Program-made: the position numbers and the translations under genes
Shown here: positions 2,994 through 48,857 of the stretch, piece after piece
Layout of the letters: each line of letters opens with the position of its first letter
Numbering within the stretch: the first letter of the stretch is position 1
Notes under the pieces: model-generated
What the model was told of the DNA's origin: nothing
Database searches by the model: none
What the model saw: the letters and a program-made list of their open reading frames with translations, nothing else
Source: Octopus bimaculoides
Taxonomy: Eukaryota
Direction of reading: 5' to 3'
DNA: 63,667 bases
Assembly (NCBI RefSeq): GCF_001194135.2
Contig: NC_068984.1
Coordinates: 85,789,777 to 85,853,443, forward strand

Positions 2994-3423
2994 ATGTAGA
3001 TGGATGTGGGAGTATTGATATATCTTGTTCAGTAAAACAGTACACTGACATCAAATGAAATCATAACCTTCATACTAAAGGATCAATGAAGAAGATCTCT
3101 ATAAATGTGCATGCTTCTCACAATTTTGTACATCAGCCAATCCAGTGCTTGATATGTACCAGAATAAGATGTATGAACAAGCTGCTAAATAGCTAGTGCA
3201 TTAAACTCAGTTTCTGTAGCACTAAAACTCTAACAATCATATTAAACTATTACAGGACAACTTTTCTGCTATCAAATAATAAGGGGAATGGCATTGTTTT
3301 GTTCAGGTAACACAACGAAACATTGATAGTGTAATTATATGACAAATTATGAGATCAGATCCCAGGATTTTATTCACTTGATCATTATTAACTGAAATAT
3401 ATCAGATTGTTCCATAACAAACC

Positions 3424-5388
3424 ATGGGTGGTGACTGTCAACCAGGGACTGCAGTAATTTCTCTAGCAGTTGTTGGTACAGCTCTGACTTTAATTGTTAT
3501 TTTTGTCATTGTTAAATGCTTATATCGCTATTTTAAGAAGCATTCTAGACATTCAGAAAATGCTGATTTAACTATATATGATATACGAAAATTATCAGAG
3601 CAAAGAGACAGTGTCTATAAATGTGCATGTTTTACACACTTTCCTTTTGTACATCAGCCAAGTGCCAGGAACCTCTGTCACCATCAACAACAACAACCAC
3701 AAACACAGATAACAGAAAATTCAACATCAGAATGTTCTTCTCTCCAAAACAAGAATACTAAACTAGCATACATAAATCCTGATTTTGAAGAAGTGATCCA
3801 AGGAAAATGTATTCCTTCAAATACTTCAAACTCAATTAGTTGTGCTGACAGCTGTATATTTACTGAGAATGATTCTGCATCACATTCCTATGTTCAAAAA
3901 GAAAGTAATATCCAAAACTCTAGTATGTATGATCCAAATTTTTTGCTTTCAGCCTACAATGCTGGGTACCCTATTGGAAACTGTCTGAAGGAAATATATC
4001 AAATAACAGAGCGCAGTATTACAAAACAAATTTGTAATAAACTGGTGGTTTGTGTAAGTCACCTGGTTACTGACGTTGGTGACACTCTCATACTTGATAA
4101 CATGGGTATATCTCTTTATATACCACCTGGAGCCATTGAAAGTGGGAAGAAACAGGTTATCTCTCTTGTGCTTAACTGGGACCTCTCAGATAATCCTCTG
4201 ATGACTGGTGATGAATCTCTTGTAAGTCCTCTTGTCTATTGTGGACCCCATGGTTTGAAACTGAAGCAAAGTTGTCAACTTACATTCAAACATTGTGCTT
4301 TTAATGTAAACGAACTAAAAATCTTGAAAAGTGAGACTGAACTTACAGGTCATAAAGATTGGCAACAGATAAAGGACAAAGACCATTCTGGGAATAACAA
4401 TGAACAGTGTCAAAACTCTTTTAATATCACACCAAATGAGTGTCAAGTCAATATAAGTAGTTTCACATTATTTACAGCCATCATGACTATTCTGGAAGAT
4501 TGTGATGATGACAGTCTTCCACAAAGCTGTAAATGGTTGCAATTGGCTGCTTTTTCATGTCCACTAAAGTCAAACAGTTCACATTACCAAATCAGAATTT
4601 ATTTTTTAAACAAGACGCCATGTGCTCTACAATGGGCCATTCAAAATGAAGCTAAATTTGGGGGTGTATTATGTTGTCCAGAAAAAGTGTTTTTGTTTGA
4701 TGGTAAGAAGGGAGTTGGACATGGAAAAGATGTGATTATTAATACAATATATACTTCTGAAGGATGGGAAATGATAGAAGATACAGATGACGAGTCAAAC
4801 AGAATTCCGTTCCTCTATATTTGGCATGGGAAATGTCCATATGCATCACTTTGTTTTCATCGTCAACTTTCTACATCAAAACCAACAAAAGACCTTAGTT
4901 TACAGTTCCATATCTTCCAAGAGACTTTGGAAAGTGCAGGTGAAAAATTAATTGTCCAAAACCAGGCCAAGCCAAATATTTATGATGATAGTGAGCAGCA
5001 GTGTCAGAAACATAAATCACCCCAAATCAAAATCCAAGTTTCAGTTGATGGATTTAAGGAAAGCCAAGATATTTTTGATGTTGCAAACCATTTGAAATGC
5101 AAGAAAATTCCACAGGAACTAAGATTGAAGCTTAAATTACTACTAGATCCTTCTTGTTTATTTGATAAAAACTGGAAAGCTTTGGCATCGTACTTGAAAC
5201 TTGATTCATCAATTCGTTACATGGAAGCAAAAGACAGTCCAACTGATCAACTTCTGGACATCTTAGAACAGAAAATGTACAGCTTGGAAGCAATACACCA
5301 TATTTTAACAGACATTGGGAGAATTGATGCTGCTACTGAAATAGAAGAATTTCTTGAACAGTCAGTGGAGGAATTACCACAGAATTAA
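3424..5388 (+). CDS. UNC5CL: UNC5C-like ZU5-UPA-death-domain membrane protein lacking an ectodomain (single exon, 654 aa)
   Basis: Intact 1965-bp ORF with aaccATGG context and an in-frame TAA 9 nt upstream. TM helix AVISLAVVGTALTLIVIFVIV is followed by basic residues. ZU5: LILDNMGISLYIPPGAI...LVSPLVYCGPHGLKLKQSCQLTFKHCA. UPA: KWLQLAAFS...IRIYFLNKTPCALQWAIQNEAKFGG. Death domain: KLLLDPSCLFDKNWKALASYLKL...SPTDQLLDIL. Orthology to vertebrate UNC5CL is not established. Confidence 0.85.
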   Translation: MGGDCQPGTAVISLAVVGTALTLIVIFVIVKCLYRYFKKHSRHSENADLTIYDIRKLSEQRDSVYKCACFTHFPFVHQPSARNLCHHQQQQPQTQITENSTSECSSLQNKNTKLAYINPDFEEVIQGKCIPSNTSNSISCADSCIFTENDSASHSYVQKESNIQNSSMYDPNFLLSAYNAGYPIGNCLKEIYQITERSITKQICNKLVVCVSHLVTDVGDTLILDNMGISLYIPPGAIESGKKQVISLVLNWDLSDNPLMTGDESLVSPLVYCGPHGLKLKQSCQLTFKHCAFNVNELKILKSETELTGHKDWQQIKDKDHSGNNNEQCQNSFNITPNECQVNISSFTLFTAIMTILEDCDDDSLPQSCKWLQLAAFSCPLKSNSSHYQIRIYFLNKTPCALQWAIQNEAKFGGVLCCPEKVFLFDGKKGVGHGKDVIINTIYTSEGWEMIEDTDDESNRIPFLYIWHGKCPYASLCFHRQLSTSKPTKDLSLQFHIFQETLESAGEKLIVQNQAKPNIYDDSEQQCQKHKSPQIKIQVSVDGFKESQDIFDVANHLKCKKIPQELRLKLKLLLDPSCLFDKNWKALASYLKLDSSIRYMEAKDSPTDQLLDILEQKMYSLEAIHHILTDIGRIDAATEIEEFLEQSVEELPQN

Positions 5389-6579: not shown

Positions 6580-8776
6580 GGATAAACAATAATTGTGCTA
6601 GACTTAGGACATCTAAGCTAGACTTTTAGGAAGCTCATAACAACAGTTCCTCTATCCCAGATTCGTTTTAGTTTCTATTTCTTATTTTGATATGAGTAGC
6701 ATCATATAACATGTGTAACTGTATGACAAGAGAAAGATTTGTTGAGTAAGCATATGTGCATTGACACATATGACTGTCTAGAGAAAGATTTAGATACCAG
6801 TAGTATAGATGACAACTGGAAATTTCTACAAAATAACATGCTTAAGGCTATAGATCAGATGTTCAGATGTACAGCTGGGGAAAATTCCAAGTCAAACCAA
6901 AGGTGACATAGTTGTGGAATGATAGGGCTAATATGATGGTAAAGCACAAGAGACAGGCTTGGAAAACCTAAAGAGCATTGATCCTACAACATGCAGATCA
7001 GAGGCATGAAGTGTTCAGGATTGCAAGACAGTGTTAGAGAGAACTGAGATGTAACTGTTGAGTAGTGTATTCAGAATGATAAAGGCATGCTTACCATTGC
7101 TATCAAGGATGAAAACATGTTATGAAAGAATTATTATGAGAGGCAGTTGAATGTAACTATTTCATGTTGGCCCTACAGAGGATCTGACAATTGAAGTTGA
7201 AGCATAAAAGTAAATAAAGCAATTAAAGACATGAAGGGAGGGAAAGCTGTTGACCCATTAGGGATAATCAGAGGTACTCAAAATAACTAGTGAGATAGCA
7301 AACATGATTACCATGCATATAGTTATTGGAAAGATGTCATACCCAATGACCGGTGTAGCAGTATCACTATAAACTGTTACAGAGACAAAGAAGATGCCTT
7401 GCAAAAAATAACAGAACAATTGATTCATAACAGAGTCAACCTAGATGAGATGCAGTTTAGCTTCATACCCAACAGAGTACCACAGGTGCAATCTTCCTGG
7501 TGAGACAACTACCAGAGAAATACTTGGTTAAAGTAAGCCATTATTTCTAGCATTTGTTGACTTGGAAAAAGTATTTGACAAGGTACCGTGTTCAGTAATT
7601 TGATGTTTACTAAGGAAATTAAGTGTAGGTAAATGGCATGTGATGGCTGTACAAGCTATATACAAAGACGCAGTAAATAAAGTGAGTCAGTAATGATTTC
7701 ACTGACAAATTTATCTTGAGGGTAAATTATGGTTCAGTCCTCAGTCCTCTTACTCTCTTATTTCTCATAGCTTTACAGGCCATCACAGGGAAGTTTCAGA
7801 TTGGCTGTCCATGGGGACTCATCTATGCTGATGAACTCCTTCTCATAGTGGAATAAGAGAGAAAATTCCAGGCATGGAAGCTAAACCTAGACTTGAGAAG
7901 CCTCAGGGTAATCTTAACAATGACTAAGGCTTTAGTAGGCGGGAAAAAAAAACAGGATCCCAGTATCATCAGAGAAATAGTCTTTCTTGTTTATGCAGAA
8001 AAGCTGTAGATAGAAATTCCATATGTTGTACCTTTTGGAAGCTACAGACTCATATGGGTGTAGTAGAATCACAGACAGACTAACAAAGTAAGCTTCACAT
8101 GTAACAGATGCACTGAAGCAATACATTCTACGAACGCACTGGAAATAGATTCTCTGAAATGTTCAGATGGCTTACTAGAAGTAGTTCTGTTACAAAGGAA
8201 ACATAACTAGCAAAGGGAGTATCTGAAAGTAGCATAGCCAGAGTAAGAACAAGTTAGTTTACTAACTATTATCACAACAGGCAATAAACGTCTTTTTCCT
8301 CAGAATGATGGACAAATATTATGATGCTTGTGTTAAAAGCACAATACTGCATTAGAGTGAGACATGAGCCTTGATTGTAGAAGATTTTCAAAGACTAGAA
8401 AGAAGTGAAGCTAGCATGGTCTGATGGACGTGCAATGTTAGTGCTTGTGAAAGTACAAATGAGCTAAGGGAAATGATGCGTACAAGAGGAACTGGGTGTA
8501 ATATGCAAGACAGGAGGTTGTGGCAGTATGGGCATGTGTTGTGTAAAGTGCTGTGCATTCCAAGTTTGAGGAACCTGTGGAAAAGGGAAACCAAGGAAAA
8601 CTGGGTTGAAGTAGTGAATGCTGATGTAAAGGTGCTACATCTCATGTTGGAGAGGACAAAAGACCATACTCACGAGCAAATAGAGGTACTACAGAAAACT
8701 CATCCTCCTATGATAAAACACTCTCTTACACAAGGGTAGCAATGAAGATACTGTAACATACATCATCATCATCATG
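6580..8776 (+). mobile_element. Degenerate RTE-clade LINE (same family as 1-352)
   Basis: Broken frames give IPNDRCSSITINCY, RVNLDEMQFSFIP, FVDLEKVFDKVP and LIYADEL (YADD site). Ends near a (CAT)n tract at about 8759-8775. Confidence 0.8.
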
Positions 8777-8864
8777 ATTTAATGTCCATGCTTCATGCTG
8801 GCATGGGTTGGACAATATATATATATTTTTTTATTTTTATATATTTATTTTTATTTTTATTTTT

Positions 8865-9070
8865 ATATATCTGTAACGTACTATGCTGACGAGCGATAGC
8901 TAGATTTCATTCTGGTAATCGTGAAATCGGTCGATACATAGTTGAGTTTATTGTTTTAAAAAAAGTTTTTTTTTTTAAGAGTTGCTTTTCCTCTCATTCA
9001 GTAATAAAATGTGTTTATTGGGAAGTTTAGTGTGTGGCATTATTCTGTTGTTATGCCCTTATATAAATAA

Positions 9071-9075
<5 letters not shown>
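8865..9075 (+). mobile_element. Short hammerhead-bearing element ending in a 22-nt hairpin and (TA)n (PLE pseudo-LTR / retrozyme-like)
   Basis: U-rich leader, hammerhead, about 95-nt spacer, GGCAT-N12-ATGCC hairpin (9036-9057), CTTATATA, then (TA)n. Homologous to 26890-27228 on the - strand. Confidence 0.6.
8880..8942 (+). ncRNA. Minimal type I hammerhead ribozyme fold
   Basis: Stem I ACUAUG(8880-85)/CAUAGU(8937-42); core CUGACGA (8886-92); stem II GCGAU/AUCGU, extended by GCUAGA/UCUGGU; GAAA (8923-26); stem III AUCG-GU-CGAU; cleavage triplet AUA ending at 8936. Confidence 0.75.
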
Positions 9076-9123
<48 letters not shown>

Positions 9124-9956
9124 TGTATATATATANNNNNNNNNNNNNNNNNNNNNNNNNNNNNNNNNNNNNNNNNNNNNNNNNNNNNNNNNNNNNNNNN
9201 NNNNNNNNNNNNNNNNNNNNNNNNNNNNNNNNNNNNNNNNNNNNNNNNNNNNNNNNNNNNNNNNNNNNNNNNNNNNNNNNNNNNNNNNNNNNNNNNNNNN
9301 NNNNNNNNNNNNNNNNNNNNNNNNNNNNNNNNNNNNNNNNNNNNNNNNNNNNNNNNNNNNNNNNNNNNNNNNNNNNNNNNNNNNNNNNNNNNNNNNNNNN
9401 NNNNNNNNNNNNNNNNNNNNNNNNNNNNNNNNNNNNNNNNNNNNNNNNNNNNNNNNNNNNNNNNNNNNNNNNNNNNNNNNNNNNNNNNNNNNNNNNNNNN
9501 NNNNNNNNNNNNNNNNNNNNNNNNNNNNNNNNNNNNNNNNNNNNNNNNNNNNNNNNNNNNNNNNNNNNNNNNNNNNNNNNNNNNNNNNNNNNNNNNNNNN
9601 NNNNNNNNNNNNNNNNNNNNNNNNNNNNNNNNNNNNNNNNNNNNNNNNNNNNNNNNNNNNNATATATATATATATACATATATATATAGTCCACTGGAGG
9701 GATAAAGGTAGAATGAGGTATTTCTGCCTCTTGGCTGAAACAGCTGTAAGGTGTTATCCCAATTTCTATTGCTATATGTTATATTTTAATAATTACTGAT
9801 ATTTTATATATTGTCATACATGTGTGTATATTGCTATAATTGTCCTTTTAGTAAATAAATAGATTGACATAATATAATATCTATAAGTTGATGAATACCA
9901 CCTTTTGATCCCCTCCATTTTCTTATTGCTCTCTCTCTCTCTCTCTCTTTATACAA

Positions 9957-10003
<47 letters not shown>

Positions 10004-10195
10004 GGGAGAGAAGGAGAGAGAGAGAGAGAGAAATATAAATACATTTTATATATAAGGTGTATATATATCATCATCGTCATCAACATTTAATATCTATTTT
10101 CCTTGCTGGCATGGGTTGGATCGTACTATATATATAAACAGTGTGTGTGTGTGTATATATATAAATATATATATATATGCACACACATCTATATG

Positions 10196-16059: not shown

Positions 16060-16590
16060 ATTCAAGTATCAACAGAGCATTTTTTTAACATGCTCTACCA
16101 TCATGTCAATTCCAGTATGTCTGACATATTTCTCAAACTTGGTTGTTATTACTTCCAGTGCTCCTACAGCTATGGGGACGGCAGGTACTCTCTTCATTGC
16201 CAACATTCTAGCAATTTTGTCATTTAGTATATTTTTCCACTTTCAACAGCTCTTTGTTACCTACACCTGCATCCCCAGGTATGGCAATATCTATGATCTT
16301 TGCTTCCTTCTTCCTTTTATTCACTACTACAATGTCTAGTCTTCTGGTATCAATTAGAGTCACATTTGATTGTAAAGTCCCACAAGATCTTATACTCATG
16401 ATTCTCAATGACGCTTTCTGGTTCATGTTTGTAGCATTTCCATGTTCTTCCAGGACTGTACTTCTCACACAATCTCCAGTGAACAAACTTAGCTATGTTA
16501 TCATGCCTCCTTTGGGCAATTTTGCTACTTTCAGTCATACCATGTGATAATGTTTCATTTTTGTTGCCACACACCCTATATGCCCTGATG
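16060..16590 (-). mobile_element. R4/Dong-like (RLE) non-LTR retrotransposon 3' fragment
   Basis: RVCGNKNETLSH (degenerate CCHC), RRHDNIAKFVHWRLC, KILWDFTIKCD, RRLDIVVV...KIIDIAIPGD...KELLKVEKY (PD-D/E endonuclease), then ARMLAMKRVPAVPIAVGALE in a shifted frame. Confidence 0.8.
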
Positions 16591-21907: not shown

Positions 21908-22789
21908 CTAGAAGTAAGAGATAAAATATATATTCATATGTACACACACATACATACATTACGCAAGGACATAGAAATACTTGTGATAGTCAGCCAGCAT
22001 GCCAGATGAATCCCTATTTCTTGTTAGAACATCTATCTAGAAGGATACTCTAAGACAAAATCAGAAGCTAGTTCAGCTTCTGGTCATCCCCTAGCCAATG
22101 CTGAGCAACCACACCGAAAATGGATTTAGTAGCTGGAAACTGTATGGAAACTTGCCATATATATATGTATACATCTTGTATTTGTATTCACCACCACCAC
22201 TTGTCAACCAGTGTTGGCTTCTTTATGTTTGTGTAACTTAACAGTTCAGCAAAAGAAACTGATGGATTAAGTATCACACATAAAAAAAAAGTATTGAGGC
22301 CAATTTGTTTGACTAAACCCTTCAAGGTGGTGCTCCAGATGGCGACCGTCCAATGACTGAAACAAGTAGAAGGGTGTGTTTTAGAATGTAGATGGAGAAA
22401 CATTGTGATTGCAGTTTAAACTAAATGGCAAATTAATCCTTTTTTAAAGAAACCTCAAATAAGATGTACTGATGTGCTACAAGAAGAAATATCTACCATT
22501 TTGAATTTCAACAGCCCTCTTCATCATACAGTATCTAGTTGGCTAACTGTGCTTCAATATTAATGATTATGAGTTATCTTATTCATTGTGTCAACGAAGA
22601 GAATTCTTCCTCACACTGATATAATGTGAGGAAGAATTGCTAGAACTAGAGCAAGACACCTATGTCCCCTCTATACTTTAAATCTCTCAACTGGCCCAAA
22701 GCCAACCCTTTCAATACTACTCCCCACACCTCCCACTTTAGGGGTTCTTGTCTTGCAAGATACTTGATGATCTGGTTGGTGCTGGTGCC

Positions 22790-23310
22790 ATGTAAAAAAA
22801 CACTGGTGATGGTGCCACGTAAAAAACACTGGTGATGGTGCCACGTAAAAAACACTGGTGATGGTGCCACGTAAAAACACTGGTGATGGTGCCACGTAAA
22901 AACACTGGTGATGGTGCCACGTAAAAAGCACTGGTGATGGTGCCACGTAAAAAACACTGGTGATGGTGCCACGTAAAAAGCACTGGTGATGGTGCCACGT
23001 AAAAAGCACTGGTGATGGTGCCACGTAAAAAACACTGGTGATTGTGCCACGTAAAATGCATTGGTGATTGTGCCACATAAAAAGCACTGGTGATAGTTCT
23101 ACGTAAAAAGCACTGGTGATTCTGCCACGTAGAAAGCACTGTTGATTGCACCCTGTAAAAAGCACTGGTGATGGTGTCACATAAAAAGCACTGGTGATGG
23201 TTCCACATAAAAACACCTGTGATGGTGCCACATAAAACACACTGGTGAGGGTGCCACATAAAACGCACTGGTGATGATGCTACATAAACAGCACTAGTGA
23301 TGGTGTCAAA
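22790..23310. repeat. 26-bp minisatellite, about 20 copies (cactggtgatggtgccacgtaaaaa[a/g])
   Basis: Units start at 22801, 22827, 22853, 22878, 22903, 22929 and so on to 23292. Left copies are near-identical and right copies degenerate. Confidence 0.95.
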
Positions 23311-23470: not shown

Positions 23471-23977
23471 GAGCAGATGAGATACTGGCTAGAGAAAAGA
23501 ATGATAACCTTGTACTTCTTCTCTGTAAATTATTTTGAATATATCCATTTTTAGGTAGAAAAGATCCACTCTGTAAGGTGGTTGGTGTTAGGAAAGGCAT
23601 CCAGCTGTAAAAACCCTGCCAAAACAGACAGTGAAGCCTGGTGCAGTCTTCTGCCTAGCCAGCCCCTGTCAAACTGTTCAACTCATGCCGGCATGGAAAA
23701 TGGACGTTAAATGATGATGAAGTTAACCTGTTTGAATTATACCTTTGATGTGTAAGAAAATCATCTTCACAATCATTTTGCTTAATTTGTAAAATTATCC
23801 TTCACAGGAATCCTTTCATGTTACCAATGGCAATATGAAGCAAAAGACAGAAACTTCCAACAGACATACCAAAGAGGCACACAAAAGACATCAGAGTTTT
23901 TATTCCAACTTCAATGCTACAATAAATTCAATAAACTAGACCAAAAAAGTAACAAGGATAGATAACCGCAAACATCA

Positions 23978-24789: not shown

Positions 24790-25260
24790 ACGGTATTCCA
24801 GCTGTGTCCATCTTGTGTTCTTTTTAACCGTTCGTCTCCTTCATTGGACACGAAACTCAGCTTGCGAAGACCTGTTGGGGCAAACGAAAGCGAAATCGTG
24901 ATGGCACCTGTGCCCAGCGTCGCCTTTCTGGCACTTGTGCCCGTGACATGTGTAAGGATTTTCGAGCGAGATCGTTGCCAGTGCCCCTGGACTAGCTCTT
25001 GTGCGGGTGGCACATAAAATACACCATTTTGAGCGTGGCCGTTGCCAGTACCACCTGACTGGCCTTCGTGCCGGTGGCACGTAAAAGCACCCACTACATT
25101 CTCGGAGTGGTTGGCGTTAGGAAGGGCATCCAGCTGTAGAAACTCTGCCAAATCAGATTGGAGCCTGGTGTAGCCATCTGGTTTCACCAGTCCTCAGTCA
25201 AATCGTCCAACCCATGCTAGCATAGAAAGCGGACGTAAAACGATGATGATGATGATGATT
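24790..25260 (+). mobile_element. Relatively young family-B retro-repeat with internal ggtggcac(g/a)taaaa repeats
   Basis: CpG-retaining; ggtggcacgtaaaagcacccactac...gagtggttggcgttaggaagggcatccagctgtagaaac...ccaacccatgctagcat and a (GAT)n tail. Confidence 0.75.
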
Positions 25261-26134: not shown

Positions 26135-26461
<327 letters not shown>

Positions 26462-26889
26462 TCACACAAAGTTCAAAACCAACATTGCAACCAGGAACTA
26501 TGAACACTAAGGTTGTGTTTAAATGATCTGTGAAAATGTATGTTGGTCAAGAGAAGGAAGATAATTTTATATATATGCATATCAAGGGACATTAAAATAA
26601 TGCTGTTACATACTGTCATGGTTTTGATATCTACTTATATCAATCTACCCTTCATTTAACATCTCTTCACAATTTTTATTTATTTAACATCATGTTCTGT
26701 GAGCAATAACATCATAGGTTATTGATTTTCATTGGGTCAATAACTGGTTTATAACATTTACAATGGCAAGACTGAGAAATGATTGCCTGTGCCAGTGGGT
26801 GTCATGAATAGCACAAGGGAGTCATTCACATACACTGGTTTTCCTCACAGTATTTACATCTCCTACAGAAATATATCATCAAAAGATAT

Positions 26890-27228
26890 ATATATATATA
26901 TATATAATTTATATAAGGGCATTACTATATAGTAATGCCTCACGCTTAGAGGGACTAAATAAGTCAAAACTACCAAAAAATAAGCACATATTTACCGAAA
27001 GCGAGGGGATGCAACTTTCAAAAAATTAACCTCCTAAAAACATTTAACTTAACGGCAAACCACTGGTTTCATAATTAATGCAGCAATGTAGTAAGCTGCA
27101 TCTTTTATTCATCAGTGCACGTATGGTCGAGACACATAAAAAATAAACAAAAATCAACATACCCCGATGTACCCAACAAAGTACGATGACTTCTGTTCAT
27201 CCTTATATATCCGTGAAAGAGGCTGGCT
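26890..27228 (-). mobile_element. Second copy of the hammerhead-bearing (TA)n-anchored element, in a PI4KB intron
   Basis: - strand order: U-rich leader, hammerhead, about 110-nt spacer homologous to 8943-9035, perfect palindrome GGCATTACTATATAGTAATGCC (26918-26939), CTTATATA, (TA)n. The 5' end runs into an N gap. Confidence 0.6.
27052..27122 (-). ncRNA. Minimal type I hammerhead ribozyme fold, sense to PI4KB pre-mRNA
   Basis: Stem I ACG(U)GCA/UGCCGU; CUGAUGA (27115-27109); stem II AUAA/UUAU plus AUGCAGC/GCUGCAU; GAAA (27070-27067); stem III ACC-AGU-GGU; triplet GUU ending at 27058. Confidence 0.7.
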
Positions 27229-27939
27229 NNNNNNNNNNNNNNNNNNNNNNNNNNNNNNNNNNNNNNNNNNNNNNNNNNNNNNNNNNNNNNNNNNNNNNNN
27301 NNNNNNNNNNNNNNNNNNNNNNNNNNNNNNNNNNNNNNNNNNNNNNNNNNNNNNNNNNNNNNNNNNNNNNNNNNNNNNNNNNNNNNNNNNNNNNNNNNNN
27401 NNNNNNNNNNNNNNNNNNNNNNNATATATATATATATATAATCATCATCCTTATTTAATGTGTTTTCCATGCTGGCATGGGTTGGACAAGCATTGGCATG
27501 TCAGAAGACTGCACCAAACCCTGCTGTCTGCTGTGGCATGGTTTCTACGGCTGGATGCCCTTTGGGTGGGCTTCCACACAATTTACATCAACTGAAAACT
27601 TGAAGCTATGATAGAAAACATGTGTTCAAGATGCCGTGCAGATGGTTGCAAAACATAGCCATGCAATACATCAGTATTCCCCAAGAACATTGGGTCCATC
27701 CAGCATACAGCAAACAAAAATGAAAACATAAAAGAAACAGAAGTGCTGACTAGTCGAGCCTTTATATGATCATCAAAACCCACAAGAAACAGCAGCCAGT
27801 TATTTTTCAGATTATACCTTACTGTCTCAAATAAGTAAAGAGTATGTGATTTGTTTTACTTACTCTCAAAAACACAAGAAGGTTATAACTGGAATGTATT
27901 TGATCACAAGTACAATCAATCAAGATTGACCCAAGTCTA

Positions 27940-28221
<282 letters not shown>

Positions 28222-29829: not shown

Positions 29830-30544
29830 CTAGATAAATAAGAAACAAAATGGTACTTCAGTTTCATCAGCATGATATCAAAATATTGTTATATACCATG
29901 GTCATACTGTTGTCACTGTCATATCACTGTAGTCATAGTAATCATTTTCATATTGCTATGATTATGCTATCATTATTATCATATCTCTGATTATTCTATA
30001 ATCACCGTCATATTGCTGATTTTATTAGCACATCATTGTCATATCATTTTGAGAGAAAAAAAAAAAGAAAATACAGTAACAAGAGAGGGAGAGAGAAAGG
30101 GAGGACACTAATTTTCTTTCCTTTCTCTTTGCTTCTCTTTATATACCTTTAGCTCCAGGGTGTATTTATTCATGTTTGATTTCATTTTTATTTATGAATT
30201 TTTTATTTGTTTTTTTTTCATTACTTTACCCTTTTACTATTGTTTATTTTAGTATTCTTTTTCTTTCTTTCAAAAGAATCCGGACTTCACTCACTCTCTT
30301 CACCTTTCATTTGATTTCTATCTATTTTCCCCTCAAAATACTTATAAGCCTTGCCATCTGTCCAACCTTAGAACATTTGATCCCTGTAACATTATGCAAT
30401 AAACTGTTTCTCTGATGATCTGTTGTGGTTAAACATCCAACTGCTCTCGAAACATCCAATTGTTCCAAACAACCTTAACATGAAATATACATAGGGAACT
30501 AAAGATATAAACTGGTGTTCATCACAATTTCTTATTTATATAGA

Positions 30545-31750
30545 TAATCTGGCTGAGTAAAAAGTAAGCAACGTTTTGAAACAGGAAATTCATCACAATA
30601 TATTTCAACAATGTGGAAATCTTATTCATCAAAGTACTATTACAGTCAACACATTTTTGCCAATGAGTTACAAGTATGTGTATTTCGGTAACATAAAAAT
30701 CTGGAGTTCTGAAGCTGATAAACTCTTTGAATGCACTTTCAGCAACGGTTTGGTTTTTGAACTCCTCCTCTTGCAGGAAACCATCAAGGTGCTTGAAAAA
30801 GTGGTAGTTGGTAGGAGAAAGGTCTGGGGAATAAACTGGTTGGGGAAGAACTTTGTAGCCAAGTTCCCTGAACTTCTGGAGCATCATTAGCGAAACGTGT
30901 GATCGAGCACGGTCATGAAGAATGACTGGCCCTCTTCTGTTGACCTGTCTGGGACGGAGGAGTAGTAGTTTTTTGTTTATTCATGGCAATATGTTTCTGC
31001 AATAATGGTTTTTGCGGGTTTTAAGAAGTTACAGTGGATGACTCCAGCAGTCCACCACCAAACAGCCACCATAACCTTCTTTTTGAAGAGCTCGGATTTA
31101 AGGAAGGTTTTCGGCGCTTCATTTTGGTCCAACCACTACGAATAATGATTTTTATTATTGTACAGAATCCACTTTTCATCGCTAGTTACAATATGGTCAA
31201 GAAATGGATCAGTCTGGTTATGGAGAAGAAGCGACGAGCAAATTTCATATCTGCACATTTTCTGATTTTCATTCAAATCATGTGGTGCCCATTTGTTGAG
31301 CTTTTTTGATCTTTTGATCACATGCAAATGGTTGCAGGTAGTTTTCTGGCTAACTTGAAGTTCCTTTGCCAGTTTTCGAGTGGTTTTACATGGATCTTTC
31401 TTAATGCCAGTCTCCACTGTGAAATCGTTTAAACCATTTTCGAGTTGATCACTCACTGGCCATTTCCTCACCAAATGTTTCATTGATATCACTAGCAGTT
31501 TCAGCTGCTTTACGCCCTTTTTTGAAGTTGAATAGCAAAATTGCTCGAATATTATGCTTTGACAGTTCCATTTCAGATGATTGTAACAATGATGAAAAAA
31601 AAATACCAATGTTGATTTATTGATGCATTTGGGCAAGTCAATGTCTGTATTATCAGACAATTGCAAAGAAATGTTTTTAAAAAATTCAAAACTCTGCAAA
31701 AATCAGGTACAAATTCTTCATGATTCAAAACGTTGCTTACTTTTTACTTA
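30545..31750 (-). mobile_element. Defective mariner element in a PI4KB intron
   Basis: Perfect 25-bp inverted repeat agtaaaaagtaagcaacgttttgaa (30556-30580 / 31724-31748). Transposase pieces: TTRKLAKELQVS...KWAPHDL...DHIVTSDEKWILYNN and LPQPVYSPDLSPTNYHFF...HWQKCVDCN. Confidence 0.92.
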
Positions 31751-35559: not shown

Positions 35560-37949
35560 CTGCAAGTAGAGAGTGAGGGGGGAGATATATTTAGAAAACA
35601 TCAATTTCTATGTAACAACACCAACAGGTCAATGACAAATATGGCTATTACAGCCACAATCTGAAAAGATGAAGAAAAGCAGAAGAGAGGTTGAGTGGGG
35701 TGGGCCGAAGCATTCATGGAAATATTTAAACCAAAACAATGCAAATTTTATGTTCCATTACTTTGAAATACAAATACCAATTTAAGAAAATATCTATATA
35801 TTTACTCAACCTGTAAGAAATTCCCTCTTAAAATCATTCCCTGCTACCTAAAAAAAAAAAAATAATGAAGTTAAGAATGCACAAAAAGACAATAGTCATA
35901 ACTAGAATTTCTTTGGTCACAAGTCTGGATAATCAAGACTGATTTGGGTCTTAACAACAAAAACTACTCCTTCCAGCTTTGATTCATCACTAGGTGGTTC
36001 ATCTTTATCTCCCAGTTTTCCCCTGCACCTCTGCAATTCTACTTCTATACAAAAATGCATCAAACATAGTTGGCCAGGGCAGAGAAAAGAGAAAGGTACA
36101 ACTTTCTTTAAATATCACATGGGTAAGTGTTGCTGAAACAAAAAGATATCTCTTATAAAACAAAGTTATAAGTGGCTTGAGAGAGTCTGTAAATCTTTGA
36201 ATACAAGTATAGAGTTGGTTTTATAAATAATGCTCAACGGTCTACATCCTTTCATTAGTGCTACATCAGCATTTCTAGAAAAAATAACTTTCACGAGATA
36301 AATCCTCCTAGTCTCAAATAGGTACCATGTGCAGACACAGTTCACTATTTTAGGTGACAGAGCCACTAAGTGAATCTCAATGTGGGCACCCAATTTGCTA
36401 AAAATAACAATCAAATCCCCCAGAAATCACATCTTTCTTAAAAATAGGATGACACAGTGGATAATGTAATTCATGATACATTATTCTGAAAAACAGTAAT
36501 GAAAAAATAAAAGACGGGATCCACAGCTGGACATATGTCTTTTTGGTCAGGACTGATCTGAAGCTAAATAACAACAGAAGCATTATATAACTGCTGGATA
36601 TTATGTTGGATTACAATGTAATCACTTTGAAAATGAAACCTACTGATGAAATATCTGTTAAGGACATGAACCCTACAGAAGATTCTACATTGAAAGAAAT
36701 GGAACCATTTTTATGGAGATACATGAAAAAATATAGATGCTATTCTTTTTATCCTCTAAAAAATATACGAATCTCATTAGACAAGGGAAAAAGTACATAC
36801 AAACAGTATATGCATTCAATAAGGTAAAAAGTATGTACAGTCTTGAAAAGATCAGCTTTTAATTCTAGTACACAACTGGTGGCAAGATTATAAGGGGGCT
36901 GTGTTTGGCTCCAGGACAATCCTGATCCAGCAGACCTGTAATTAAAGGGGTTCCAAATGTGCCCATATTGTCTCTTTAAGTGCAAGTAGGACATCATTAT
37001 TTAAAGTATCCTTTCCCTATTTCAGACAGTAATTTTAAGGGAAATTTGATTGCTATTTCTTGCAGATTGAGCAATCACATTGCAGATCCCTTAGTGACTC
37101 ATTTTGGTGATTAAATTTTAGCCAGAGTATCAAGGAGTAATTTGTAGGATCCGTTGAATTGGAATACTGGCTGGAAACATTGATAAAATGAAAATAAACT
37201 TCTTAGAAGTTGTAAAATAAAACTGGAAGTTAATTAGGGACTGACAGGATGAAAAAAATTAGGTTGTTTTCTGTTTTTTTTCTTTTTCTCCTAATTTTGA
37301 GCTGCTGTCTTTTTGAAAATAAAAACATTATAAAGCGCTGAAGAACAACACAAGTATTTAACTCCTTAGTATTCCGACTATTCTGTTAAATGCAATACTT
37401 ATTTGGCCCCATTGTTTTGAATTAAACACACATTATCGTGTAGCTTTGAGACTTTGATGATGCGACTGTTTATTTTAAGAATGACATGGTAGGGTAGGTG
37501 TGAGAGGGTGAATATGACTGGTTTGAACATAAAACAAGAATATATGAGCCAGATATAGTCAGTTTAAATGTTAAATACTATAGTGAAGAGAGATGAAGCT
37601 CCATATTTGAAAAGGTTTTTTACTCATTCCGCTTCTCTTATATATAGGATCTTTCTCAAATTCTGCAATAACTAACTATGGAAAAAGAGGTTATACAGTG
37701 GACAAGATTGTAAAGATTGATACAAAGGTGGAGTCTAAAAACAGAAGCAATGCCTATCATAGTAGGTAGCGCTACTAGGCACTGCACACATCCTATGTAA
37801 AACATTTTCAATACAGTGAAAATAAGAGCATCACAAAAAAACCACAACACATACCCAAGGTACACAGAGCTGCACTCAGTAGTGCAGTGAAAGCACATGA
37901 TAAAAATAAGACTACTGATAGTAATAATGGTTTCAAATTTTGAAAGAAG

Positions 37950-43681: not shown

Positions 43682-45062
43682 ATGTGCATGTGAACATGCT
43701 TTCAAAATGGCCAATTCACTCTATCATTATACAGACTACGTGTGGCAATTTAGGTGACAGGTGACAAATTTTGGGGTTTGAAGAATCACACACAAAGAGG
43801 AATCATCAAAGAACTCTAAAAGGATAAATAAAATCTAATTATGCATATACTCTGTAGCGTTTCTCACACTTTTACTCTAGAACGTGTGTGTGTGTAGGCA
43901 GGGTATTCAATAGTTATGAAAGGAAGTCTATTATTCAAGAAAGTACTCAACACATAGTATTTCATTCTTAGTAACACTAAATATGTTTCATATATGTCAT
44001 CATTATCATCATTTTGCATCTGTCTTCCATGCTGGAATGGGTTCAACAGGTTCAAGAGAAGTTGGCAAGCCAGAGGACTGCACCAAGCCCCACTATCTGT
44101 TTTGGCATGCTTCATATCAACCGCATTACAGAGTGCTTTTTATGTAGCACCAGCTCTGGTAAGGTCTGTTTGGCATAGTTTTTACGACTGTATGCATATA
44201 TGTGTGTGTGTATGTGCGCATGCGCATAAACACAGTCATTATTTATTCATTTGTTTGTTTGCTTGTTTGATTTTACATTTGATTTTCCATGCTAGCATGG
44301 CTTACATCAGGCATAAGCAACCTTTTACAAGAAGCAGGCCGCATGAGACATGGCTCATCATAAGACAAACTACTAAAAAAAATTGAAGGTAATTTTTTGT
44401 TAGGTGCGCCATTCAGATAACCAAACAAGCCACAGGTTACCTATAATTGGTTTAGCTGATTATGATACTAAGGTATCGTTTTACAAACAGATGCCCTTCC
44501 TGTTGCTAAGCCTTGCCTATTTTCAAGTAAGGAATCTCATTCCATAAGTCTTGGAAGTACAAAACCTAACTGATGATTTGTTGTCAAGTATAGCAACAAC
44601 ATCACTATTTCTAGCTCATCGAGTTTTGGAGAAGTGCAGATGTAAACACATACACACATAAAAGACTTCTTTCAGTTTCCATCTACCAAATCCACTCACA
44701 AGATTTTGGCCAGTCTAGGACTATTGTAAAAGACACTCCTCCAAAAGGTGTCACACAATGGGACTGAACCACCAAACCTTATGGTTGTGAAGCGAACTTC
44801 TCAACCACACAACAATGTCTGCACAGACACATATATAATATATAACGAAGGTTAGAGTTTGCAATATTTTTATTTAATTGTTGACAACTGTTTCAACAAT
44901 TCCTTGATGACTAATCTTGCATCATGTTTATAAACATGTCTATTATCTTCAATTGTAATTAGTGGATCTTCAGCTTATATGGAACATAGGGGGATATCCC
45001 ACTCACAATTTCAGACAGCTACTGTTTGTAGATGTGCTTCCCAAGATAAATGCCTGACTGCA

Positions 45063-48000: not shown

Positions 48001-48857
48001 GTTGGGAAGCAAACTTCTTATCAAATAGCCATGCCTGTATGTGTGTGCATATATATTCATAAACACACATGCACACACACACACACACAGATGTGTGTGT
48101 GTATATATATGTACAGTACATTAAATGTTGCACAGTAAGTTGATTAGCTGGAAACCTTTAAACAGTGCCCTTTTCTAGAGAACTGCTCTCTGAATACGAG
48201 TGTCTAACACAATTTATTGCATAACATTACAGCCTTATATAACATTATCATCTTTAACCCTAGAATTACGAAACCCAATTTTACAGGGTAATGTGAATTA
48301 TGGCATAGAAATTTTCATCCGACATACTTTTTCCACTTCAGAATCATCAAACACATACTTGGAATCTTTAAAGACTCATCCCACCCTACTCAGAAATTCT
48401 TATGTAATTGAAGCATGTAGCTGCTAGTATTAAAGTGGTATAACAGCTGGTATTGTACTGAAATACTGTAATGGGCTGTATAGATACTAATCAGTCCTGT
48501 GTTAGTTATACAATATGAATGCAGGCATGAAAGTGTTCCAGAAGTTCAGTTCAGAAGCACATAGTTCTGTGTTAGTTTCCATTGTGTTCGGTATCTTACA
48601 TGAGTGTCTTCTCAGATAGTCTAATGCCTTCTGCATGAAATTTGGTACACAAATTATATATCATCATCATCATCATTTAACATGTTTTCCATGCTCACAC
48701 ACACACACACACACACACACACAACTCATGTGTGTGTGTGTATGTGTGTGTGAGTGATTTTTCTTTTTTTAGTTTTATTTAAGAGAGTTCAAGCCAGTTA
48801 CTAACAAAGTAACAAAGCTTTCAGAGACAGGTAAGTTCCCAGTGTTTGTAAATATGT

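Follow-up and report, generated by a model that had tools for sequence, protein, structure and literature searches.

A hammerhead motif in a PI4KB intron of Octopus bimaculoides, probably carried by a (TA)n-associated interspersed retroelement

Penelope-like elements (PLEs) carry type I hammerhead ribozymes in their terminal repeats (pLTRs), with a short helix III and a small palindromic loop that suit them to act as dimers (Cervera & de la Pena 2014, PMC4209133), and most such hammerheads genome-wide are single motifs that are "probably related to truncated PLEs" (PMC4209133). The insertion of PLEs is biased towards microsatellites, with (TA)n targets in almost all Hydra families and commonly for Naiads, and insertion of this kind often obscures the target-site duplications (Craig et al. 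2021, PMC8557442). Animal non-LTR (long terminal repeat) retrozymes are AT-rich units of 170-400 nucleotides (nt), each with a single type I hammerhead (Cervera & de la Pena 2020, PMC7229834); retrozymes are argued to derive from PLE terminal repeats and occur as dispersed monomers, ~43% of the Xenopus copies being intronic (Li et al. 2026, preprint 10.64898/2026.07.22.740005). No cephalopod entries were met in the supplementary tables checked for the PLE and retrozyme papers. Here we describe a 63,667-nt window of the Octopus bimaculoides genome (NCBI RefSeq assembly GCF_001194135.2, contig NC_068984.1, forward-strand positions 85,789,777 to 85,853,443), in which an intron of the phosphatidylinositol 4-kinase beta gene, PI4KB, contains a hammerhead motif in the sense orientation (copy A), and a second, related motif (copy B) lies outside the gene. 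The intronic fold is probably the hammerhead of a short interspersed retroelement that inserted into a (TA)n tract inside the PI4KB intron, where it would be a passenger and, on its own, a poor cutter. Hammerheads of its kind are known and common in animals, and the motif is probably not a gene-regulating device.

Copy A was identified on the minus strand at 27052..27122, both by reading the sequence and by a descriptor match, and it scored 95.4 bits with a covariance model built from the two copies (R1). From 27122 to 27052 the strand reads ACGUGCA, CUGAUGA, AUAA-AA-GAUGCAGC-UUACUACAUU-GCUGCAUU-AA-UUAU, GAA, ACC-AGU-GGU, U and UGCCGU. The topology is type I, because helix I is open and helices II and III are closed by loops. 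All parts lie on the minus strand. Helix I joins ACG-U-GCA (27116..27122) to UGCCGU (27052..27057, placed by sequence and fold) in 6 base pairs (bp), with a bulged U at 27119. The core letters were read directly: CUGAUGA, C3 to A9, occupies 27109..27115, and G12, A13 and A14 occupy 27068..27070. Helix II as a whole (27071..27108; pair probabilities 0.94-1.00) is composed of a 4-bp base, AUAA/UUAU (27108-27105 with 27074-27071), whose first pair is A10.1-U11.1; a 2x2 internal loop, AA/AA, between the basal and distal stems; an 8-bp distal stem, GAUGCAGC/GCUGCAUU (27102-27095 with 27084-27077); and a 10-nt loop, UUACUACAUU (27094-27085). Helix III, the quasi-palindromic ACC-AGU-GGU at 27059..27067, has the A15.1-U16.1 pair plus 2 bp and a 3-nt loop. 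Hammerhead numbering places the predicted cleavage site at 27057..27058, after U17 (27058) and before 27057, with GUU as the triplet. A first-pass annotation of the window had proposed a minus-strand hammerhead from 27122 to 27052, and our reading agreed with it base for base: all invariant core positions were found, the predicted cut at 27058/27057 was the same, and the two features that it had called suboptimal, an A-U pair at 10.1-11.1 and a GUU triplet, were both present. The two-part helix II with a 7-bp distal stem was likewise recovered, with one extra G.U pair.

Copy B, on the plus strand at 8880..8942 within a repeat copy at 8860-9135, was a second descriptor match and scored 92.1 bits with R1. 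It reads ACUAUG, CUGACGA, GCGAU-A-GCUAGA-UUUCAU-UCUGGU-A-AUCGU, GAA, AUC-GGUC-GAU, A and CAUAGU. Helix I (ACUAUG/CAUAGU) has 6 bp, the core box CUGACGA lies at 8886-8892 and GAA at 8923-8925. In helix II a 1x1 loop separates the 5-bp basal stem, which begins with G10.1.U11.1, from the distal stem, which has 6 bp and a 6-nt loop. Helix III (AUC-GGUC-GAU) is followed by A17 at 8936. The core that defines the hammerhead class (C3 U4 G5 A6 N7 G8 A9, G12 A13 A14, A15.1-U16.1 and H17) is complete in both copies, and both show the helix order I-II-III with an NUH triplet, GUU in A and AUA in B. A G10.1-C11.1 pair at the base of helix II is strongly preferred in hammerheads, without being absolute. 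It is absent from both copies, which have A10.1-U11.1 (A) and G10.1.U11.1 (B).

The descriptor required CUGANGA, a helix II of at least 4 bp from 10.1, GAAA, a helix III of at least 3 bp ending in U, H17 and a helix I of at least 3 bp; it was fitted after the fact and is loose enough to accept copy A. The number of matches expected per simulated window was 0.0075 with first-order and 0.0025 with third-order composition of the window, and the real window holds two, copies A and B. The copy A hammerhead exceeds chance. When the descriptor was relaxed, one poor match was added at 36643-36713 on the plus strand, at an expected rate of ~0.1 per window; this third motif, CUGAUGA ... GAAA with a helix II of only 3 bp, was judged to be probably a chance match. 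It lies antisense to PI4KB.

Comparison of the two copies pointed to conservation of the fold. The hammerhead regions are 52% identical overall, less than the 3' parts described below. The core bases of the copies are identical apart from N7, where the boxes read CUGAUGA in A and CUGACGA in B. Both copies form all 17 helix pairs that they share, ten of which the descriptor forces in copy B; nine have changes at both partners and three at one. When the partners were slid by 1-3 columns, 0-2 such changed pairs and 27-52% pairing were obtained. The distal pairs of helix II, which are among those that covary, and half of helix I are not demanded by the descriptor. Helix II is built on one plan in the two copies even though the letters of the distal stem differ: its base has 4-5 bp, a small internal loop separates this base from 6-8 distal bp, and the terminal loop measures 6-10 nt. 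The internal loop after 4-5 bp of helix II and the 6 bp of helix I are compatible with the geometry of a contact between the loops of helices I and II, on which fast cleavage by hammerheads at physiological Mg2+ depends; unlike in canonical type I hammerheads, conserved nucleotides for the loop 1-loop 2 contact are not recognisable from the two copies. The simplest reading of these sequence changes is that the hammerhead was under selection in active lineages of the element.

Homology between the copies extends downstream of the hammerheads, where ~125-145 nt can be aligned between the 3' part of copy A (26907..27051, minus strand) and that of copy B (8943..9068, plus strand). Identity is 73% in the 3' part and 82.5% in its last 40 columns. 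Taken alone, the sequence that separates the ribozyme from the terminal hairpin gave a global alignment with z=7.9, and none of 2000 dinucleotide shuffles scored as well. In copy A a perfect terminal hairpin of 8 bp, GGCATTAC-TATATA-GTAATGCC, forms a 22-nt self-match at 26939-26918, and the terminus CTTATATAAAT follows directly at 26917-26907. Copy B has the hairpin GGCATTA...TTATGCC at 9036-9057 and then CTTATATAAAT at 9058-9068. Each copy ends with the hairpin, the identical CTTATATAAAT and a (TA)n run, in that order: the microsatellite that adjoins the 3' end of copy A, the presumed insertion target, lies at 26886..26906, and an imperfect (TA)n continues past the terminus of copy B up to an assembly gap at 9136. 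The shared terminus ATGCCCTTATATAAAT occurs in the window only at copies A and B. Upstream of the copy A hammerhead, the sequence up to a gap (27123..27228, minus strand) includes a T-rich stretch that aligns weakly with copy B; the remainder is unique in the window, and copy A has no defined 5' limit. TA-rich sequence also lies 5' of copy B, and upstream of copy A the gap has (TA)n at its far edge. The repeat element is at least ~210-250 nt long, and its copies A and B have diverged. Searches of the window with blastn, nhmmer, exact terminal motifs and the unfiltered two-copy covariance model gave no third copy; the next-best match to the model, at 16483-16549 (13.7 bits, E=1.2), lacks both a core and the terminus of the element and was rejected as a copy. 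Two patterns taken from the conserved terminus had no match in either metagenome or viral contigs.

The gap in the intron, 195 N at 27229..27423, has (TA)n next to it on the far side, at 27424-27440, and it could hide more element sequence or a tandem copy. This gap and the one at 9136-9661 lie within ~70-110 nt of the hammerhead copies, and both have (TA)n at their borders. At both places it was probably the microsatellite that interrupted the assembly, and further element sequence could be hidden there.

The intron that hosts copy A spans 26402..27951 on the minus strand, from a GTGAGT donor at 27951 to a CAG acceptor ending at 26402. The upstream PI4KB exon ends ...KQLQ at 27952, directly before GTGAGT, and the downstream exon, which begins at 26401 past the CAG acceptor, encodes part of the PI3/PI4-kinase domain (Pfam PF00454). 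Further PI4KB exons lie on the minus strand at 24127-23987, 21907-21780 and 20543-20358, the last of which contains the stop codon. The database proteins closest to the flanking exons are named phosphatidylinositol 4-kinase beta. In a protein search with these exons the best PI4KB relative was 82% identical and came from short cDNA-like contigs, and a near-identical PI4KB protein was not found in the database searched. Together, the splice sites, PF00454 and the database relatives confirmed the sense orientation within a PI4KB intron that had been proposed earlier. From copy A the distance to the 5' splice site is 829 nt in the assembly as it stands, and that to the 3' splice site is 655 nt. 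Copy B is located outside PI4KB, ~11 kb beyond its stop codon and on the opposite strand, and ~3.5 kb downstream of an open reading frame (ORF) with ZU5, UPA and Death domains. Because copy B lies beyond PI4KB on the other strand, the repeat has no specific tie to this gene, and the gene-specific role implied by the first-pass annotation was not supported: the motif belongs to an interspersed repeat with a diverged copy outside the gene. Its presence in the intron would therefore be explained by transposition into a (TA)n microsatellite and not by PI4KB biology.

The predicted energetics of the fold were those of a weak monomer. In a single molecule, the pair probability of helix III was 0.02 in copy A and 0.00 in copy B, with hairpin energies of -0.8 and 0 kcal/mol, respectively. 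As self-duplexes, the quasi-palindromic helix III segments ACCAGUGGU (A) and AUCGGUCGAU (B) reached -13.2 and -10.4 kcal/mol, and the helix III duplex between two molecules of copy A comprised 8 bp. Two whole A motifs cofolded at -45.8 kcal/mol versus -38.4 kcal/mol for two monomers, an improvement of 7.4 kcal/mol by way of the intermolecular helix III. Helix I of copy A was also weak (pair probabilities 0.10-0.41), and a competing CACUG/CAGUG pairing made the minimum-energy fold of this copy 3.6 kcal/mol better than the hammerhead fold. In newt satellite, PLE and axolotl retrozyme hammerheads, cleavage is poor or absent with single motifs and takes place with dimeric constructs (PMC4209133, PMC7229834). 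The energetics of copy A, with a weak helix III in the monomer and a strong one in the dimer, match this dimer-dependent design. On these energy models the lone intronic copy A is predicted to cleave the PI4KB pre-mRNA slowly or not at all, because helix III barely forms in a single copy and because of A10.1-U11.1 and GUU. The first-pass annotation had suggested that the latter two features may be why the motif is tolerated. Low activity is to be expected above all from the 0.02 pairing of helix III in the monomer, which that annotation had not seen.

Several traits place the two copies close to the hammerheads of PLE terminal repeats, which share the type I topology, a short quasi-palindromic helix III favouring the dimer, and a long helix II, and which likewise occur as solitary dispersed copies beside microsatellites, including (TA)n, in an AT-rich host element. 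The G+C content is 34% in copy A and 30% in copy B, with one hammerhead per non-coding unit. Unlike PLEs, copies A and B have no visible ORF for a reverse transcriptase (RT) or GIY-YIG domain and no flanking direct repeat. Their helix III has 3 bp versus the usual 1-2 bp of PLE hammerheads, their helix II is two-part, with 12-13 bp in all and an internal loop, and positions 10.1-11.1 are A-U or G.U. The copies also resemble retrozymes (newt satellite 2, Schistosoma Sm-alpha, coral, mussel and axolotl) in being low-G+C, non-coding units with one type I hammerhead; retrozymes occur as dispersed monomers, many of them intronic, and some depend on dimers for cleavage. Unlike retrozymes, which are defined by tandem arrays and circular RNA, copies A and B are not visibly tandem.

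We therefore regard the element, with moderate confidence, as PLE-derived or retrozyme-like. It would most likely be a 5'-truncated or solo terminal repeat of a PLE, or a non-autonomous derivative ("non-LTR retrozyme" monomer), built of a hammerhead near the 5' side, ~120-140 nt of conserved sequence, the terminal hairpin and then CTTATATAAAT. Such an element would have landed in a (TA)n microsatellite that happens to sit in a PI4KB intron. In its life cycle the ribozyme would process multimeric or tandem transcripts: two neighbouring copies would share a single extended helix, made by pairing of their quasi-palindromic helix III segments, and both cores would then cut after H17. A solitary intronic copy would have no partner, unless the gap hides one, and may be tolerated as a passenger.

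A number of observations weigh against this reading. The covariation amounts to one pairwise comparison, because only two copies are available, and the structure was read from the same two sequences. No RT/GIY-YIG frame of a PLE was recognised in the window among nine ORFs (taken from the ORFs of at least 110 amino acids) compared with Pfam, and the sole Pfam RT match among these nine, at 2-367, looks LINE-like (LINE, long interspersed element). A conserved 3' hairpin and a simple-repeat end would also fit a short interspersed element (SINE) with a 3' tail taken over from a LINE. Neither copy is visibly part of a tandem array, with assembly gaps ~70-110 nt away. Real hammerheads gain stability from tertiary contacts, which nearest-neighbour energies do not count, so monomer inactivity is a prediction, and some invertebrate retrozyme hammerheads with a 2-bp helix III cut well as monomers (PMC7229834). 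Finally, no Rfam hammerhead was found at E<=10 on stretches of 701, 436, 96 and 88 nt around the copies.

Because the RT/GIY-YIG frame and the tandem arrangement are missing, the class of the element is only moderately secure, and a LINE-dependent SINE was kept as a rival. The repeat would then be SINE-like and would owe its mobility to a LINE with which it shares a 3' stem-loop and simple-repeat tail, so that (TA)n would be its own tail and not its target; the model for this is Schistosoma Sm-alpha, as first described. The conserved terminal hairpin does stand directly before the simple repeat in both copies, and the window contains LINE-type RT fragments and, among the scanned ORFs, no PLE ORF. 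We nevertheless consider a SINE unlikely. TA-rich sequence on both sides of copy B, and (TA)n at the far side of the copy A gap, fit an element that entered a microsatellite already in place; PLEs and retrozymes are characterised by a hammerhead whose helix III is short and palindromic (PMC4209133, PMC7229834); and no tRNA-, 5S- or 7SL-like head was detected by Rfam in the whole window.

It is quite improbable that the intronic copy instead works as a ribozyme, whether domesticated or tolerated, so that cutting of the nascent PI4KB pre-mRNA competes with the splicing of the kinase-domain exons. Such a role would agree with the sense orientation and complete core of copy A, with the gap 107 nt upstream that could hide a partner copy, and with intronic self-cleaving precedents tuned against splicing (CPEB3, PMC10919898; intronic hammerheads referenced by PMC4209133). 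The HH9 and HH10 hammerheads and the CPEB3 HDV-like ribozyme (PMC10919898) are, as copy A, self-cleaving-type motifs in the sense orientation in introns of conserved genes, and their logic of cleavage versus co-transcriptional splicing would apply to copy A too. These precedents are single-copy and deeply conserved at orthologous sites, and CPEB3 has been shown to matter for expression; unlike them, copy A is a member of a repeat family, has a poor helix III as a monomer and has no match to the Rfam HH9 and HH10 models. A transposon with a second copy outside the gene already accounts for the motif. The fold itself also argues against activity, with a helix III almost never formed in the monomer, a weak helix I (0.10-0.41), the alternative CACUG/CAGUG pairing 3.6 kcal/mol more stable than the hammerhead fold, an A-U pair at 10.1-11.1 and a GUU triplet. 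It is still more doubtful that a hammerhead delivered by a transposon to the sense strand of this essential lipid-kinase gene severs a fraction of nascent PI4KB transcripts, alone or with a partner hidden in the gap, and so acts as a brake on kinase-domain splicing. If that were true, the PI4KB copy would match, in an invertebrate and early in domestication, the intronic ribozymes CPEB3 and HH9.

A chance look-alike, in which an AT-rich intron happens to offer CUGAUGA, a hairpin and GAAAC in the right order, is hardly credible. It would explain the lack of an Rfam match and would draw on the descriptor having been fitted afterwards, on the poorer third motif at 36643-36713 under relaxed settings (~0.1 expected), and on a rate of ~0.005 per 64 kb, which by extrapolation to an assumed several-Gb genome would give on the order of a hundred chance matches. 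Against it stand a homologous repeat copy with the same fold, the same relative position, the same core and nine compensatory pairs, and two matches versus 0.003-0.008 expected. A C/D-box small nucleolar RNA (snoRNA)-like or other structured intronic non-coding RNA gene with UGAUGA as its C box is equally hard to sustain, and the snoRNA reading was dropped: introns commonly host snoRNAs and there is a weak Rfam snoZ223 match (13.1 bits, E=5.6), but this score is far under the 45-bit gathering threshold, no D box (CUGA) lies just 3' of the motif, copy B has UGACGA and not UGAUGA, and the conserved GAAA and three covarying helices have no snoRNA role.

The Rfam hammerhead families (Hammerhead_1, _3, _II, HH9 and HH10) gave no match at the gathering threshold on the whole window. 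Copies A and B meet the textbook definition of a hammerhead in core, helices and NUH triplet, yet they fall outside the curated Rfam alignments, likely owing to the 30-38-nt helix II and the U at 11.1. The remaining Rfam matches, namely (TA)n-driven microRNA look-alikes, snoZ223 (13 bits) and mir-725 (12 bits), were dismissed as chance. The genome thus carries a family of hammerhead-bearing, (TA)n-associated repeats missed by the curated models. Because these models miss the family, Rfam-based hammerhead counts in such genomes, of which the giant squid with its 235 Hammerhead_1 matches is one case (PMC6962438), may be underestimates. For PI4KB the message is one of caution, since a perfect-looking intronic ribozyme core is most simply a transposon passenger. 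The family could serve the study of how genes tolerate dimer-dependent hammerheads on the sense strand; if intronic sense-strand copies are depleted, this would reveal residual activity.

An abundant SINE-like repeat containing TTTAATGT..CCATGCTGGCATGGGTTGGAC also occurs in the window, at 27441-27560 (plus strand), 8758-8815, 23593-23720 and 43990-44112, and again at 25122-25256, 10060-10120 and 48655-48695. The copy at 27441 begins immediately past a (TA)n run, a sign that several families of elements here may use (TA)n tracts as hot spots of insertion. The SINE-like repeat adjoins both hammerhead copies, but a link between it and the hammerhead repeat was rejected, as their relative orientation differs between the two loci.

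Other features of the window were noted. An uninterrupted frame of 656 amino acids at 3418-5385 (plus strand, opposite to PI4KB) contains ZU5, UPA and Death domains (Pfam E 4e-20, 2e-10 and 1e-10) and looks like an exon of a death-domain protein of the UNC5/PIDD/ankyrin type. An RT fragment (RVT_1, E=4.5e-12) lies at the window edge at 2-367 on the minus strand, and a second retrotransposon-like coding remnant lies at ~16200-16560 on the same strand; the RT remnants at 2-367 and ~16.3 kb look LINE-like rather than Penelope-like. Within a PI4KB intron, two adjacent open frames of 188 and 152 amino acids at 30525-31702 (minus strand) may be a decayed mariner-type transposase, on the strength of a YSPDLSPTNYHFF-like motif, with no Pfam match at E<=0.01. 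Also in a PI4KB intron, three overlapping open frames at 22649-23310 (minus strand) consist of a degenerate tandem repeat (…HHHQCFLRGTITSAFYVAPSPVFFTW…) that resembles a minisatellite array.

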